Source: Sminthopsis crassicaudata
Lineage: Eukaryota
Reading direction: 5' to 3'
Assembly: GCF_048593235.1 (NCBI RefSeq)
Contig: NC_133623.1
Location: 930,001-994,000, forward strand
Length of the DNA: 64,000 nucleotides
Both the position numbers and the translations under genes were made by a program. Positions 4,911 to 14,218 of the stretch are shown piece after piece. Each line of letters opens with the position of its first letter. The stretch's first letter is position 1. A model generated the notes under the pieces. That model had not been told where the DNA came from. It saw nothing but the letters and a program-made list of their open reading frames with translations, and did not search any database.

Positions 4911-7900
4911 ATGAGGGCTGTTCTGGGCCTCTGCGGCCTGAGCCTGCTCGTGTCTTGTGCTGCCGGCTCTGTGTTCTGGGAGACGCGGGATGGCCCGGCG
5001 AGAGGGGAGCCCCCCTGGCCCGTCCACACCCTCCCCTCCCTCTCGCTTTCTGCCCGTCCTTTTAAAACAGAACGGAAGCAAGCCGGAAATGAATTCCCGC
5101 GAGGTGACCGGGGGTCCGGGGGGTCCGTCTCGGGGAGAGCCCGGGCTCTGCTCCACCGGCCCCGCCATCCTACCTTCTCCCTCCTTCCCACATTTGTAGT
5201 CTCCAGCCCTTGGTACTCAAAGCAAGACTGGGACCTTCTCAGGAGGCCGAGAAACTGGCAGGTGGCCGACGGTGGCGAGGAGGTGCCTTGGCTAGTGTCC
5301 GTGGCCCGGCTGTGCCAGGGTGTGGTCCTGGACCACTGGAGGGTCCTTTCCACCGCCCGCTGTCTGAGAAATACGTACGTGTCCGGGGGATCCGGGAGGA
5401 TGGCGCGCGGGGCCACGGTGGGGTCAGAACCTGGGCCCTTAGGAAGAAGCTGACCCGAGGCAGGCCGGCCCAGGCCGTGGAGTGGAAGTTAGACTGAACG
5501 GGTGGTCCATCTTTGGCTTGTGTTAGTGGATTCAGGGAGTTCCGGGCGGGATTAAGAGGAACTCCGCGCCGGAAGCGAGTCAGGCTCCGTCTCCTAGGCC
5601 ACCACTGGCCGCGGGAGCCCGGAGCAGCTGGACGAAGCTCCGTGAGAGCTCCGGCCCCGTTCACCTTGACTCCTTCCCGCCGGTTCTCAGCGGGGAGGGG
5701 GCGAGGTGGGTCTGTGACCTTGATCTTCCTGGGGTGGGGTGTGTCTGAGGCTGAGCTTCATGGGGGGGGGGGGTCTCTGAGTCTCATCCCCATGGGGATT
5801 CTGCCTCTGATCACCACGTGAGGTCTGCCTCTGCTCCGCATTGGGGATCTTTGCCCCTCATTTCCACGGGGGGGAGGGGGAGAACCTGTGTCCCTGATCT
5901 TCATGGTGGGGGGGGTATCTGCCTCTGATCTCCACGGGGGAGGGGATCTGTGTCCCTGATCTTCATGGGGGGGGTCTCCACCCTTGATCTCCACAGGGGT
6001 CTGCCTCTGCTCTTCATTGGGGTATCTGCCCCTGGTCTCTGTGGGGGGGGGACCTGTGTCCCTGATCTTCCTGGGGGGGCGTCTGCCTCTGATCTCCATA
6101 TGGGTTCTTTGACCTTGATGTCCTGATCCCCACAATGGCTCTTGGAGACAGATCTCCACGCCACCACTCCAGCCAGACGGGCCTTCTCGCAGCCTCCCCC
6201 CCCATCCCGCGGCATCCCATCCACGCTTCCGTCGTCCACAGGCCCGCCGACCATTCTGCATTGAAGGTGGCGCGCTAGGTCGAAGCATTCTTCTTCCCTC
6301 CCCCTGCCCCCACTGACCAGAATCCCCGTCCCTGTTCCCCCCAGCAATCCCGCTCTGTTGCGTGTGAGGAGCTCTGGGACCTGGCTCAACGGCTCTGAGA
6401 TCTGCCTGCACCCCACCTTCGTGCCCCCAGCCAGGACCGCGGCCGCCAAGAGCGACCTGGGCGTGCTCTTCCTTCGTCAGCCAGCCAGGCTGGCTGGGGG
6501 TCAGCTCCCGCTGGCCCGGGATGCCAGCAAGGCCCAAGAAAACTGCCCCTTCTGTGGACATCGGCCATGCCATGTCTACCAGCGTCAAAGTGAGTCCCTT
6601 CGGAAGGGGGGAGCCGGCTGCCCCCTCCCCCTTCCCGGAGCCGGAGAGGAACGTCCTCCCTCTAGACAGGCTCCGGCTCCAGGCTGGCGTTAAGCGGGCT
6701 TCCCAGTGGGCCGGAGAATGGGGAGGCGGGAAGCGACCGCCACTGGCTCATTTTCACCGAGGACATCGTAGGAGTCATCCCGGCTCCATGGGAAGGGCGG
6801 TTTCTCGCCCTAACCTCGGTCCTGGCCCCTAGCTTGGGGGGAGAAGGGGCCAGCTCCTCGGCCCCTCCCCAGCTCTTCTGCCTTTGGCCGACGGTTCGGC
6901 AGCGGCCCACTCGCAGCCACCCAGAAGTACTCTCGGGCGTACTCTGGGATTGTTGGGGGAGGGGCAGCCAGGGAGGAAGCAGGCTCAGGTGACAGGGACA
7001 AGCAGACTCTGGTGTCACCCCCGCATCTCTGTAGGTACCCAAGAGCCTGGACTCATGAGAGCCACAAGGACCACGGTGAGACTCCTGGGGCCCTGGGCCT
7101 GCCACCGCTCGGGAGCCGATGCCCCTGCGACAGAGACCTTCTGCATCCAGATGCATCCCTGGCCAGGCCCAGACTGTCAGGTGGGTGCTAGGCCTGGGGG
7201 GCGGGGACCCCGAAGCGTAGAGAGCGCTCCCTCCCTGGGGCGACAAGGGCACGCCCAGGAGTAAGGAGAGCCCGTCCCCCCCCCCTGCCGCCCCACCCAG
7301 GTGCAGCCCGGCAGCCCCGTGCTGTGCCGCTTTGGAAATCGACGGGAGCTGGTAGGGCTGGTCAGCGAGCCCGGGAAGGCCTGTTCCGCGCCTGTCCCGG
7401 CCGTGCGCACGGCCCCTTATCGCGGTTGGCTGGATGCTGTGGTGCAGGCTGCCCGGAAGCGACCTCCGAGCTTGCCCTGCATGCTCTCTCCACCGAGTAG
7501 CCCCCACAGCCATCCCCAGGTGCACCCAACTCCATACTCTGCCCTGGAGGAAGCTGACGGTGGAGCGGGCTCCGTGCAAGCCCGGGGGCCCTTCCTGGTG
7601 ACTTCCAGCCCCGGGGGCCCGGCGAAGACTGGACGGCGGCCTTCCCGCACCAGGCTCCCCCTGGCCACCGCTTGGGGCCTCCCAGAGGCCTCGGTCGGGT
7701 CCCCGGTTCTCCCTCCGGGGGCTCCGCCAGCTGCCAAGACCGGGACTCCAACCCCCTCAGCTAGAAGCTCTGCCGGAGAGCCCCGGGAAGGGGCGCCCAC
7801 CTCCCGCTTCCGCCCCAGGCCTCCTCAGCCTATCCGTGATCCGGCCCTAGGCCGCTTAGCTGGCGACAGAGGCGCGGCGCAGCAGGGGGCACAGACGTCC

Positions 7901-13900: not shown

Positions 13901-14218
13901 CATGTGCGAGCGCCTCCGGGTTCTGGGTTTGTGCCACAGGATCTCATGGGCCCAGGCAGTGCCCTGTTGTGCCGCTCACGGGCTAAGAACGGGACCTGGA
14001 GGCAGACTGGGCTCACAAGCATCAGGTCTCTCACCTTCCTCCTGGCTCCTTACTTCCCCTGGATTTCCAAGACCACCTCTGTCCAGGCGGACCACAGGGG
14101 GCTCAATCAGTCGGTGGGCAAGTCAATCCCTGTCACATCTGCAGCAGGGGCAGAGCCCAGGGGCCCTCGGGGCCTCCTCTTTCTCTTGACCCTATGGCTG
14201 CGGTTCCTGAGAGCATAG
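4911..14218 (+). CDS. Unnamed multi-domain serine-protease-like protein: signal peptide, 3 catalytically dead trypsin-fold (S1) domains, long Pro/Thr/Arg repeat linker, GPI-type C-terminus (~1,759 aa)
   Basis: Exons: 4911-5004, 5071-5103, 5200-5374, 6345-6589, 7035-7180, 7301-10283, 10386-10557, 10761-11029, 11298-11431, 11526-11754, 11922-12057, 12348-12595, 13533-13669, 13940-14218. They sum to 5,280 nt and all phases are compatible. Each domain repeats the trypsin-gene phase pattern (1-2-1-0). N-terminus MRAVLGLCGLSLLVSCAAG looks like a signal peptide; C-terminus SAAGAEPRGPRGLLFLLTLWLRFLRA looks like a GPI signal. All junctions are GT-AG except intron 1, whose donor reads GG at 5005 (the 66-nt intron is in frame and stop-free). 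Confidence 0.75.
5260..7465 (+). other. Pseudoprotease domain 1 (exons 3-6)
   Basis: VADGGEEVPWLVSVARLCQGVVLDHWRVLSTARC (His57 position is Arg); KSDLGVLFL (Asp102 kept); DCQ|VQPGSPVLC (Ser195 position is Pro); RELVGLVS...AC...YRGWLDAV. Confidence 0.75.
5700..6130 (+). repeat. Degenerate intronic tandem repeat
   Basis: Alternating units tctgcctctgatctcca and tgtgtccctgatcttcatggggg recur several times in intron 3 of the protease-like gene. Confidence 0.75.
8205..9225 (+). repeat. Coding tandem repeat: 30-nt units (PATRGSLTFQ / PASRGPLTFH / PATGRLLTPR) with a 90-nt higher-order period, grading into 15-nt units (RPLTP, RPQIP)
   Basis: Unit ccagcaaccagagggtccctgacc(ttcc/cccc)(a/g)g is repeated for ~1 kb inside ORF 7301-10561, and that frame stays open throughout. 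Confidence 0.92.
10386..11700 (+). other. Pseudoprotease domain 2 (exons 7-10)
   Basis: KCGMRPGF...[33 protein letters not shown] (His57 position is Ser); GPTGLGLIQLKEP (Asp102 position is Gly); DCWVPGW; SCK|GDLGAPLMC (Ser195 position is Leu). All canonical disulfide cysteines are present. Confidence 0.88.
11922..14080 (+). other. Pseudoprotease domain 3 (exons 11-14)
   Basis: MPWQALIV...LCGGSVLSPSWILTSAHC (His57 kept); WNDLALLLLQKP (Asp102 kept); ECWLTG; DLMGPGSALLC (Ser195 position is Pro); WRQTGLTS...YFPWISK. Confidence 0.85.

Follow-up and report, generated by a model that had tools for sequence, protein, structure and literature searches.

The locus at positions 4911-14218 on the forward strand of the window, the 64,000-nucleotide stretch of fat-tailed dunnart DNA that was analyzed, is a real, intact, spliced, and transcribed gene. 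It is very probably the ortholog of the X-linked marsupial homolog of PRSSLY (called PRSSLX in the wallaby), and its product is a pseudoprotease of a putative cell-surface type. The encoded protein consists of a signal peptide, a pseudoprotease domain (D1), a 937-aa spacer, two further pseudoprotease domains (D2 and D3), and a short hydrophobic tail. Hughes et al. 2022 (PMC9178871) already described the gene, where it lies, and its unusual structure, in a species set that does not include the dunnart.

A transcribed gene with three degenerate trypsin-fold domains

Joining the 13 coding exons, each bordered by GT..AG, yields a coding sequence of 5346 nt whose sole stop is terminal, and the 1781-aa product is identical (1781/1781 aa) to the RefSeq protein XP_074133209.1, annotated as "uncharacterized LOC141548327" in this species (Table 1). 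An earlier, sequence-only reading had joined the exons in frame from a signal-peptide ATG at 4911 to the stop at 14218, as the open, RefSeq-identical coding sequence bears out. It counted 14 exons where the spliced model has 13, and with ~1,760 aa it was right about a large single protein and wrong about its exact length. RefSeq isoform X1 carries 32 additional amino acids at residue 65, the translation of intron 1, and is otherwise the same as the main isoform.

All 12 junctions are backed by RNA contigs, including those from spacer to D2 and from D2 to D3. One 1994-nt contig spans 10283/10386 and every junction within and between D2 and D3, including 11754/11922, and reaches ~14497; two of the junctions at which the sequence-only reading had proposed RNA checks lie in this one contig. 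The third, 7180/7301, is seen just through a 14-nt overhang, and the joints 5103/5200, 5374/6345, and 6589/7035 are also observed. The giant exon 5 is mostly tiled by RNA contigs, with internal joints absent. Because none of the listed contigs covers ~8812-9153 in the repeats, no single RNA record crosses the array. That D1 is continuous with D2 and D3 in one molecule is instead supported by the open frame, by splice-site use on either side, by the RefSeq model, and by the conserved layout. This gap, together with the presence of D2-D3 alone in some placental gene models (dog, ferret), is what would be expected of two transcription units, an upstream gene of D1 plus spacer and a downstream D2-D3 gene, fused only in silico. 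Such a division is nevertheless highly improbable, as the junction 10283/10386, which links the 3′ end of the giant exon with D2, is present in RNA contigs from two studies, D2 has no start codon or signal peptide of its own, and the layout is kept from newt to rat.

In the single gene, each of the three domains has a trypsin fold. When whole domains were used as queries (exon-by-exon queries are too weak for D1), D1, D2, and D3 each exceeded the Pfam Trypsin (PF00089) cut-off of 20.6 bits, a profile test that the sequence-only reading had suggested. The AF2 model of D1 (pLDDT 71.8) matches S1 proteases in Foldseek with TM values of 0.67-0.70. Catalytic positions were read off alignments to factor Xa, chymotrypsinogen, and plasma kallikrein, and a complete His57-Asp102-Ser195 triad is absent from D1 (R/D/P), D2 (S/G/L), and D3 (H/D/P), matching the residues called earlier. 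D3 retains the equivalents of C42-C58, C136-C201, and C168-C182 and lacks C191, C220, C122, and the linker Cys, the disulfide pattern described before, and the phase-1 junction between D2 and D3 (donor at 11754) is found in the spliced model. Profiles, alignments, and RNA junctions agree with the original view of one gene with three catalytically dead trypsin-fold domains. Since a full triad is also missing from every domain of every tetrapod ortholog examined, the protein is incapable of serine protease activity.

Pro (21%), Ala (13%), and Arg (10%), together with Thr and Ser, are abundant in the spacer, which lies in a stop-free frame of 1098 codons (7265-10558) with a G+C content of roughly 69%, from which the probability of such a frame arising by chance is estimated at ~e^-22. 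Tandem repeats account for ~340 of its 937 aa; the long spacer previously described as a ~940-aa repeat stalk is thus present, but its repeat nature does not extend beyond the array at 8206-9223.

Table 1. Features of the dunnart gene (window coordinates)
Feature	Position	Strand	Evidence or remark
5′ UTR, minimum extent	4828..4910	+	RNA contig begins at 4828 and enters exon 1
Exons 1-4	4911-5103, 5200-5374, 6345-6589, 7035-7180	+	Joined model = XP_074133209.1
Exon 1: start codon, signal peptide, short N-terminal segment, aa 1-64	4911..5103	+	Hydrophobic N terminus, KD 2.3; RNA joint 5103/5200
Intron 1, 96 nt, in frame without stop	5104..5199	+	Retained in RefSeq isoform X1, +32 aa
D1, degenerate trypsin fold, triad R/D/P, aa 65-310 (exons 5200-5374, 6345-6589, 7035-7180, and first 171 nt of exon 5)	5200..7471	+	Pfam Trypsin 30.4 bits; factor Xa E 3e-5 (PDB)
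Exon 5 (giant)	7301-10283	+	Joined model = XP_074133209.1
Giant exon 5, 2983 nt: end of D1 and 937-aa spacer	7301..10283	+	Stop-free frame; RNA tiling
Tandem repeat array within spacer	8206..9223	+	TRF: 30-nt base unit; 90-nt higher-order unit x6.9, 91% matches
Exons 6-9	10386-10557, 10761-11029, 11298-11431, 11526-11754	+	Joined model = XP_074133209.1
D2, trypsin fold, triad S/G/L, aa 1248-1500 plus linker (exons 6-9)	10386..11754	+	Pfam 93.1 bits; PDB alignments; one RNA contig
Exons 10-13	11922-12057, 12348-12595, 13533-13669, 13940-14218	+	Joined model = XP_074133209.1
D3 (aa 1516-1735) and Ser/Ala-rich pre-tail segment, triad H/D/P (exons 11922-12057, 12348-12595, 13533-13669, and 13940 onward)	11922..14170	+	Pfam 71.2 bits; PDB alignment; RNA junctions
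Hydrophobic tail, last 15 aa, and TAG stop, GPI-signal-like	14171..14218	+	Hydropathy maximum -15..-3
3′ UTR	14219..14497	+	AATAAA 14478-14483; spliced RNA contig ends at ~14497

Relationship to PRSSLY and PRSSLX

Sequence, domain tree, and synteny each identify the dunnart gene as orthologous to PRSSLY and PRSSLX. In a scan of 1.84 billion representative sequences, the best non-marsupial matches were bat PRSSLY (52% identity, E 2e-172) and the dog protein (50%), with PRSS55-type sequences far behind (~30% identity, E ~1e-25). The TPA records of the wallaby, koala, platypus, echidna, and newt orthologs are named 'Y-linked serine-like protease-like'; the Y protein of the bat is deposited as 'Y-linked serine-like protease'. 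In a tree of the domains, built by a quick search with SH-aLRT support and no bootstraps, D1, D2, and D3 each form a single clade across tetrapods (SH-aLRT 95, 100, and 98, respectively). For both D2 and D3, the marsupial sequences form the sister group of placental PRSSLY (SH-aLRT 89 and 97), and monotremes branch outside them.

In devil and wallaby, HUWE1 is followed by a GARIN-like gene, the ortholog of the dunnart gene, HSD17B10, and RIBC1. Collinearity between the window and the devil locus extends from the GARIN-like gene through RIBC1; HUWE1 lies outside the window. The HUWE1/HSD17B10 neighborhood given in the sequence-only reading is consistent with this arrangement. Its statement that human has no such gene between these two is in accord with PMC9178871, which reports that the eutherian X has lost the gene, that human has no copy in the HUWE1/HSD17B10 region, and that among placental mammals the gene persists only on the Y, as PRSSLY. 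The same study reported X linkage in marsupials from read depth in wallaby and devil and named the wallaby gene PRSSLX; on these published data and on synteny, the dunnart gene, which lies on a contig of 89.9 Mb, is predicted to be X-linked. Placental PRSSLY differs in being Y-linked and expressed only in testis, whereas the reported expression of the marsupial gene is broader: RNA-seq of wallaby and devil shows low levels that are highest in testis and are also found in ovary, spleen, and phallus (PMC9178871).

A layout of D1, spacer, D2, and D3 with broken triads and a hydrophobic tail is common to amphibians through mammals. The rat PRSSLY protein has the same order of parts as the dunnart protein, tail included, and the D2 and D3 triads of bat, dog, and rat PRSSLY are broken in the same manner. 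A giant, fast-evolving exon (Ka/Ks near 1) next to a conserved protease-like domain with low Ka/Ks was reported for this family (PMC9178871), and in the dunnart, too, such an exon (2983 nt) lies upstream of conserved trypsin-like exons; the sequence and repeat content of the spacer are lineage-specific. Models from bat, dog, and ferret had raised the idea that placental PRSSLY lacks D1, which was rejected because D1 is clear in rat (E 6.5e-43). Incomplete gene models, or loss of D1 in particular lineages, may explain the bat and dog cases.

The sequence-only reading had held the gene to be unnamed, with an architecture seen in no named gene, and had stated that a named gene of this architecture would overturn that view; PRSSLY and PRSSLX, named and published, are such a family. 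The dunnart, devil, and antechinus genes are still labeled 'uncharacterized' by NCBI, the architecture itself is as first described, and published marsupial expression peaks in testis, all of which would suit a marsupial gene that has no name, is unique in its architecture, and encodes an adhesion or scaffold protein of the sperm surface. That combination is very unlikely, given that the family has a name and a literature and that rat PRSSLY shares the three-domain layout. A location on the sperm surface is likewise not established, because wallaby ovary and spleen also express the gene (PMC9178871).

Among single-domain proteins, the closest relatives are PRSS55-like (tenrec PRSS55 and coelacanth 'PRSS55-like', ~30% identity), and PRSS55 is named as the closest paralog in PMC9178871. 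The two share a design of signal peptide and C-terminal hydrophobic tail; PRSS55, a single-domain protein, is described as a protease, whereas the dunnart protein has three domains, none with a full triad, and a 937-aa spacer. The polyserases PRSS36, PRSS53, and TMPRSS9 resemble it in carrying multiple S1 domains per chain, but orthology to them is not supported, as the best matches belong to the PRSSLY family and the nearest single-domain relatives are PRSS55-like. The known polyserases retain at least one active domain and have no long spacer, and they differ from the dunnart protein, in which no domain has a full triad. The labels 'polyserase-2-like' and 'TMPRSS9-like' occur as automatic names on some PRSSLY orthologs.

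Selection on the domains, and a possible GPI signal in the C-terminal tail

From three dasyurid comparisons, dN/dS is 0.26 for D1, 0.24 for D2, and 0.19 for D3, and 1.0, 0.88, and 0.42 for the N-terminal part, repeats, and C-terminal part of the spacer. The low values in the domains against about 1 in the N-terminal spacer support the view that selection has kept the predicted trypsin folds, in line with the earlier proposal of selection for a folded protein rather than decay. A decaying relic, transcribed without selection and heading for loss as in opossums, would account for the missing catalytic residues and the spacer dN/dS near 1, and opossums, along with several further lineages, no longer have a member of the family (PMC9178871). 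Even so, this explanation is scarcely credible in view of the low dN/dS of all three domains, the 5346 nt without stops or frameshifts, and the splice sites, which are all intact and used. In addition, the triads of amphibians and lizards are already broken, so their absence is ancient and not a sign of decay. The published Ka/Ks analysis (PMC9178871) appears to have folded D1 into an 'upstream ORF' with 'no identifiable domains'.

The hydrophobic C-terminal tail noted earlier is present by hydropathy and has equivalents in marsupial, monotreme, placental, lizard, and salamander orthologs. Hydropathy and the PRSS55 paralog, described in PMC6208766 as a GPI-anchored testis serine protease, suggest that the dunnart protein may be GPI-anchored at the cell surface. 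There is a smaller but real chance that the same gene yields a soluble secreted, tail-anchored, or type I membrane product instead: the dunnart tail is short and contains two Arg residues, its dN/dS is ~1.4 (over 46 codons), and in the caecilian model a long basic region takes the place of the terminal hydrophobic tail. Against these alternatives stand the anchoring of PRSS55 itself and the recurrence in mammals, lizards, and salamanders of a terminal hydrophobic stretch that is preceded by small residues and followed by nothing.

Proposed role of the protein

A signal peptide and a GPI-like tail, both conserved, suggest a putative cell-surface binding protein rather than an enzyme. Haptoglobin and protein Z are non-catalytic proteins with the S1 fold, and HGF chains are among the matches to D1 in the PDB comparison. 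The likeness of the dunnart protein to this group holds in principle only, as a trypsin fold under selection whose catalytic residues are replaced, a combination that in non-catalytic S1 proteins implies binding rather than cleavage. In the proposed model, the dunnart protein would enter the secretory pathway and, like PRSS55, be GPI-anchored at the cell surface, with D2 and D3 near the membrane and D1 on a long, flexible, and probably glycosylated tether. The conserved folds would serve as binding modules, not enzymes, and the germ line would be the main site of action, with lower expression elsewhere. Genetics constrains this function weakly: mouse Prssly knockouts are fertile (PMC9178871) and a later systematic knockout study in mouse found all parameters normal, sex ratio included (PMC7617377).

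Beyond the findings of PMC9178871, the present analysis adds the conservation of layout, broken triads, and tail from amphibians to mammals and the purifying selection on D1 (dN/dS 0.26). The available text of that paper makes no mention of catalytic residues, a signal peptide, or an anchor. There is slightly less than an even chance that the protein-level anatomy of PRSSLY and PRSSLX, a surface binding protein that has been a triple pseudoprotease since the tetrapod ancestor and whose D1 is itself under purifying selection, was previously unreported.

The marsupial X copy is a natural comparator for the function of the gene before its restriction to the Y. As the dunnart develops into a gene-editable model for marsupials, it is useful to have a correct gene model backed by RNA and to know that the product is incapable of protease activity and probably lies at the cell surface.

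Identity of the gene and its locus

A protein search with the open reading frame of the giant exon returned five matches, from dunnart, Tasmanian devil, antechinus, wallaby, and platypus. The dunnart match was the RefSeq entry "uncharacterized LOC141548327 isoform X2," and the platypus match was titled "TPA_inf: Y-linked serine-like protease-like," a TPA name that is also given to the wallaby, koala, echidna, and newt orthologs; a Y protein of the bat Rousettus is titled "Y-linked serine-like protease." When 1.84 billion representatives were scanned exhaustively with HMMER, using the second and third trypsin-fold domains (D2-D3) as the query, bat (52% identity, E 2e-172) and dog (50%) proteins ranked directly after those of marsupials, followed by rat "Tmprss9l1," echidna, lizards, salamanders, and a caecilian. 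Single-domain proteins of the PRSS55 type reached only ~30% identity (E about 1e-25).

In a maximum-likelihood tree built on the separated domains, D1, D2, and D3 each formed one clade (SH-aLRT 95, 100, and 98, respectively), and because these clades extend across tetrapods, the triplication is older than the tetrapod divergence. In the D2 and D3 clades, amphibians branch off first, followed by lizards and monotremes, and marsupials group with placental PRSSLY, which identifies the dunnart gene as an ortholog of PRSSLY; this identity, and the non-catalytic nature of the product, we regard as highly probable. In both devil and wallaby, the genes follow the order HUWE1, GARIN-like gene, PRSSLY homolog, HSD17B10, RIBC1. 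Between the GARIN-like gene and RIBC1, inclusive, the window and the devil locus are collinear.

The sequence-only reading was accurate in its observation, and the gene is real. Its headline, a new and unnamed gene of unmatched architecture, is refuted by a condition that this reading itself had set, as the family has been named and published as PRSSLY (PRSSLX in wallaby). The published description (Hughes et al. 2022, BMC Biol 20:133; PMC9178871) reports that the eutherian X lost the gene while the Y kept it. It also bears out the statement that human is without such a gene at this locus, because no copy lies in the human X region syntenic to wallaby PRSSLX; this absence is the point of interest that is already published.

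Features of the dunnart PRSSLY homolog and its neighbors (window positions)
Feature	Position	Remarks
GARIN-like gene	2-4560	Upstream; match to devil locus; Pfam GARIL_Rab2_bd in wallaby
PRSSLY homolog	4911-14218	+ strand
Intron 1	5104-5199	96 nt, in frame, no stop
G-rich repeat	5735-6119	Short tandem repeat in intron 2
Stop-free frame	7265-10558	1098 codons
Spacer repeat array	8206-9223	30-nt units; 90-nt higher-order unit x6.9, 91% matches
Spacer Cys	about 10202-10204	About residue 1221
Intron 5	10284-10385	102 nt, in frame, no stop
D2-D3 linker	11922-11945	Start of D3; Arg-Ile pair (NR|IS)
D3 seventh Cys	about 11982-11984	Residue 1536
AATAAA	14478-14483
HSD17B10 and RIBC1	about 17980-25265	Downstream, expected strands; match to devil locus

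Gene structure and transcripts

Three-frame translation of 4800-14400 recovered the pieces that had been named from sequence. GT..AG borders were placed for 13 exons (14 had been proposed), which join into a coding sequence of 5346 nt with one terminal stop. The product of 1781 aa, rather than about 1760, is identical at every residue to the database protein XP_074133209.1. Exon phases fit three copies of the four-exon trypsin module (exons 2-5, 6-9, and 10-13), and the D2-to-D3 junction (11754/11922) is in phase 1, as previously proposed. RefSeq isoform X1 (1813 aa) differs from isoform X2 solely by a 32-aa insert, the translation of retained intron 1. The long stop-free frame runs through intron 5 because this intron is itself in frame and without a stop; its retention would put 34 additional aa between the spacer and D2. 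The devil intron orthologous to intron 2 is expanded to about 21 kb, with many scattered matches to the dunnart G-rich repeat (positions 12116-30850 of the devil locus sequence).

Contigs from sequencing runs of the same organism aligned to the locus. A single 1994-nt contig of run X6 joins 10283/10386 and every D2 and D3 junction, including 11754/11922, and ends near 14497, shortly 3' of the AATAAA; five of its joints were also seen in run X5, from a different study, and intron 5 was spliced out in RNA contigs from two studies. Three joints of the 5' half (5103/5200, 5374/6345, and 6589/7035) were seen in RNA, and the sole support for 7180/7301 was a 14-nt overhang matching the end of exon 4. 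The giant exon was mostly tiled by contigs without internal joints; among the contigs listed, none covered about 8812-9153 and none crossed the repeat array. Runs X1-X4, from one study and labeled RNA, gave unspliced contigs, introns included, over 88-96% of the locus (4600-14500). These could represent pre-mRNA, from nuclear or total RNA, or carry-over of genomic DNA, so they were not counted as evidence.

Three trypsin-fold domains without a catalytic triad

Queried as whole domains against Pfam Trypsin (PF00089, cut-off 20.6 bits), D1, D2, and D3 scored 30.4, 93.1, and 71.2 bits, respectively, and D1 of platypus and wallaby also exceeded the cut-off. The best AlphaFold2 model of D1, made from ten orthologs, had a mean pLDDT of 71.8 and a pTM of 0.76 (the remaining four models were poor) and matched S1 proteases in the PDB with TM 0.67-0.70 and E about 1e-12.

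Alignments to solved structures gave the same triad residues as the sequence-only reading. In D1 (aligned to factor Xa), His57 is Arg, Asp102 is Asp, and Ser195 is Pro; in D2 (plasma kallikrein and chymotrypsinogen), these are Ser, Gly, and Leu; and in D3 (plasma kallikrein), which also lacks Cys191 and Cys220, they are His, Asp, and Pro. No domain of any ortholog examined has a complete triad, so the inactivity is ancient rather than a recent decay. Across orthologs, D1 has Arg, Ser, or Asn in place of His57, and D2 has Ser/Lys/Arg/Asn, Gly/Asn, and Leu/Val/Ile at the three positions. His and Asp occur together in D3 only in therians (marsupials and placentals), with Pro at 195 throughout. 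Only monotremes retain Ser at 195 of D3, and they are missing His and Asp; position 57 is another residue in monotremes, lizards, and amphibians. Therefore, either therians regained His/Asp or several lineages lost them.

The linker Arg-Ile pair lies at the place of S1 zymogen activation cleavage and is kept in all the mammals aligned and one gecko (W-I in the other lizards); the pair is a candidate processing site between the two domains. The seventh Cys of D3 is present in all aligned orthologs, and the spacer Cys, which belongs to a conserved motif in the spacer's C-terminal part, is common to dunnart, devil, wallaby, and platypus; the two could form an inter-domain disulfide.

Selection, the spacer, and a predicted surface role

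The D1-spacer-D2-D3-tail layout is present in marsupials, monotremes, geckos, Komodo dragon, axolotl, and newt. Rat PRSSLY shares it, whereas bat, dog, and ferret models contain D2-D3 only and are possibly incomplete. By the Nei-Gojobori method, dunnart-devil dN/dS was 0.26 for D1, 0.24 for D2, and 0.19 for D3, placing constraint on D1 on par with that on D2 and D3; values for the spacer were 1.01 (N part), 0.88 (repeats), and 0.42 (C part), and for the 46-codon tail 1.4. Antechinus comparisons agree. The gene is a secretory-type open reading frame with three folded trypsin-like domains; purifying selection acts on these domains, which are unable to form a catalytic triad.

The spacer is disordered, Pro-rich (21%; Ser plus Thr, 16%), and fast-evolving, and its length varies, with whole proteins spanning 1254 aa (platypus) to 1862 aa (devil). 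The proposed ~940-aa repeat stalk exists as a 937-aa spacer, but Tandem Repeats Finder confined true tandem repeats to one array, so only ~340 aa are repeat.

Hughes et al. described one massive exon that can hold most of the open reading frame and that has "no identifiable domains" and a Ka/Ks close to 1, a trypsin-like domain of low Ka/Ks, and PRSS55 as the closest paralog. In the available supplement, the wallaby "upstream ORF" begins at the ATG of the protein, so that D1 and the spacer were apparently analyzed as one; the figures may depict D1. The available text and supplements do not mention catalytic residues, and the available main text does not mention a signal peptide, anchor, or secretion. 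The gene was already known, and possibly a modest remainder of its protein anatomy was unreported.

Family members repeatedly show a hydrophobic N terminus and, after small residues, a hydrophobic tail at the C-terminal end, and PRSS55 is described as GPI-anchored (PMC6208766). The dunnart protein is probably, though by no means certainly, GPI-anchored at the cell surface. D2-D3 would then lie close to the membrane, with D1 at the end of a long, possibly O-glycosylated tether. Expression is broader outside eutherians (PMC9178871), with tabulated wallaby TPM of 4.9-9.8 in testis, 0-2.8 in ovary, and 2.1-6.3 in spleen, and about 2 in devil testis. Mouse Prssly knockouts are reported to be fertile (PMC9178871), and a later systematic knockout study found every parameter unchanged, sex ratio included (PMC7617377). 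A specific sperm-surface role in marsupials is a tentative proposal, somewhat against the odds. More generally, the three domains would bind rather than cleave, and their main site of action may be the germ line.
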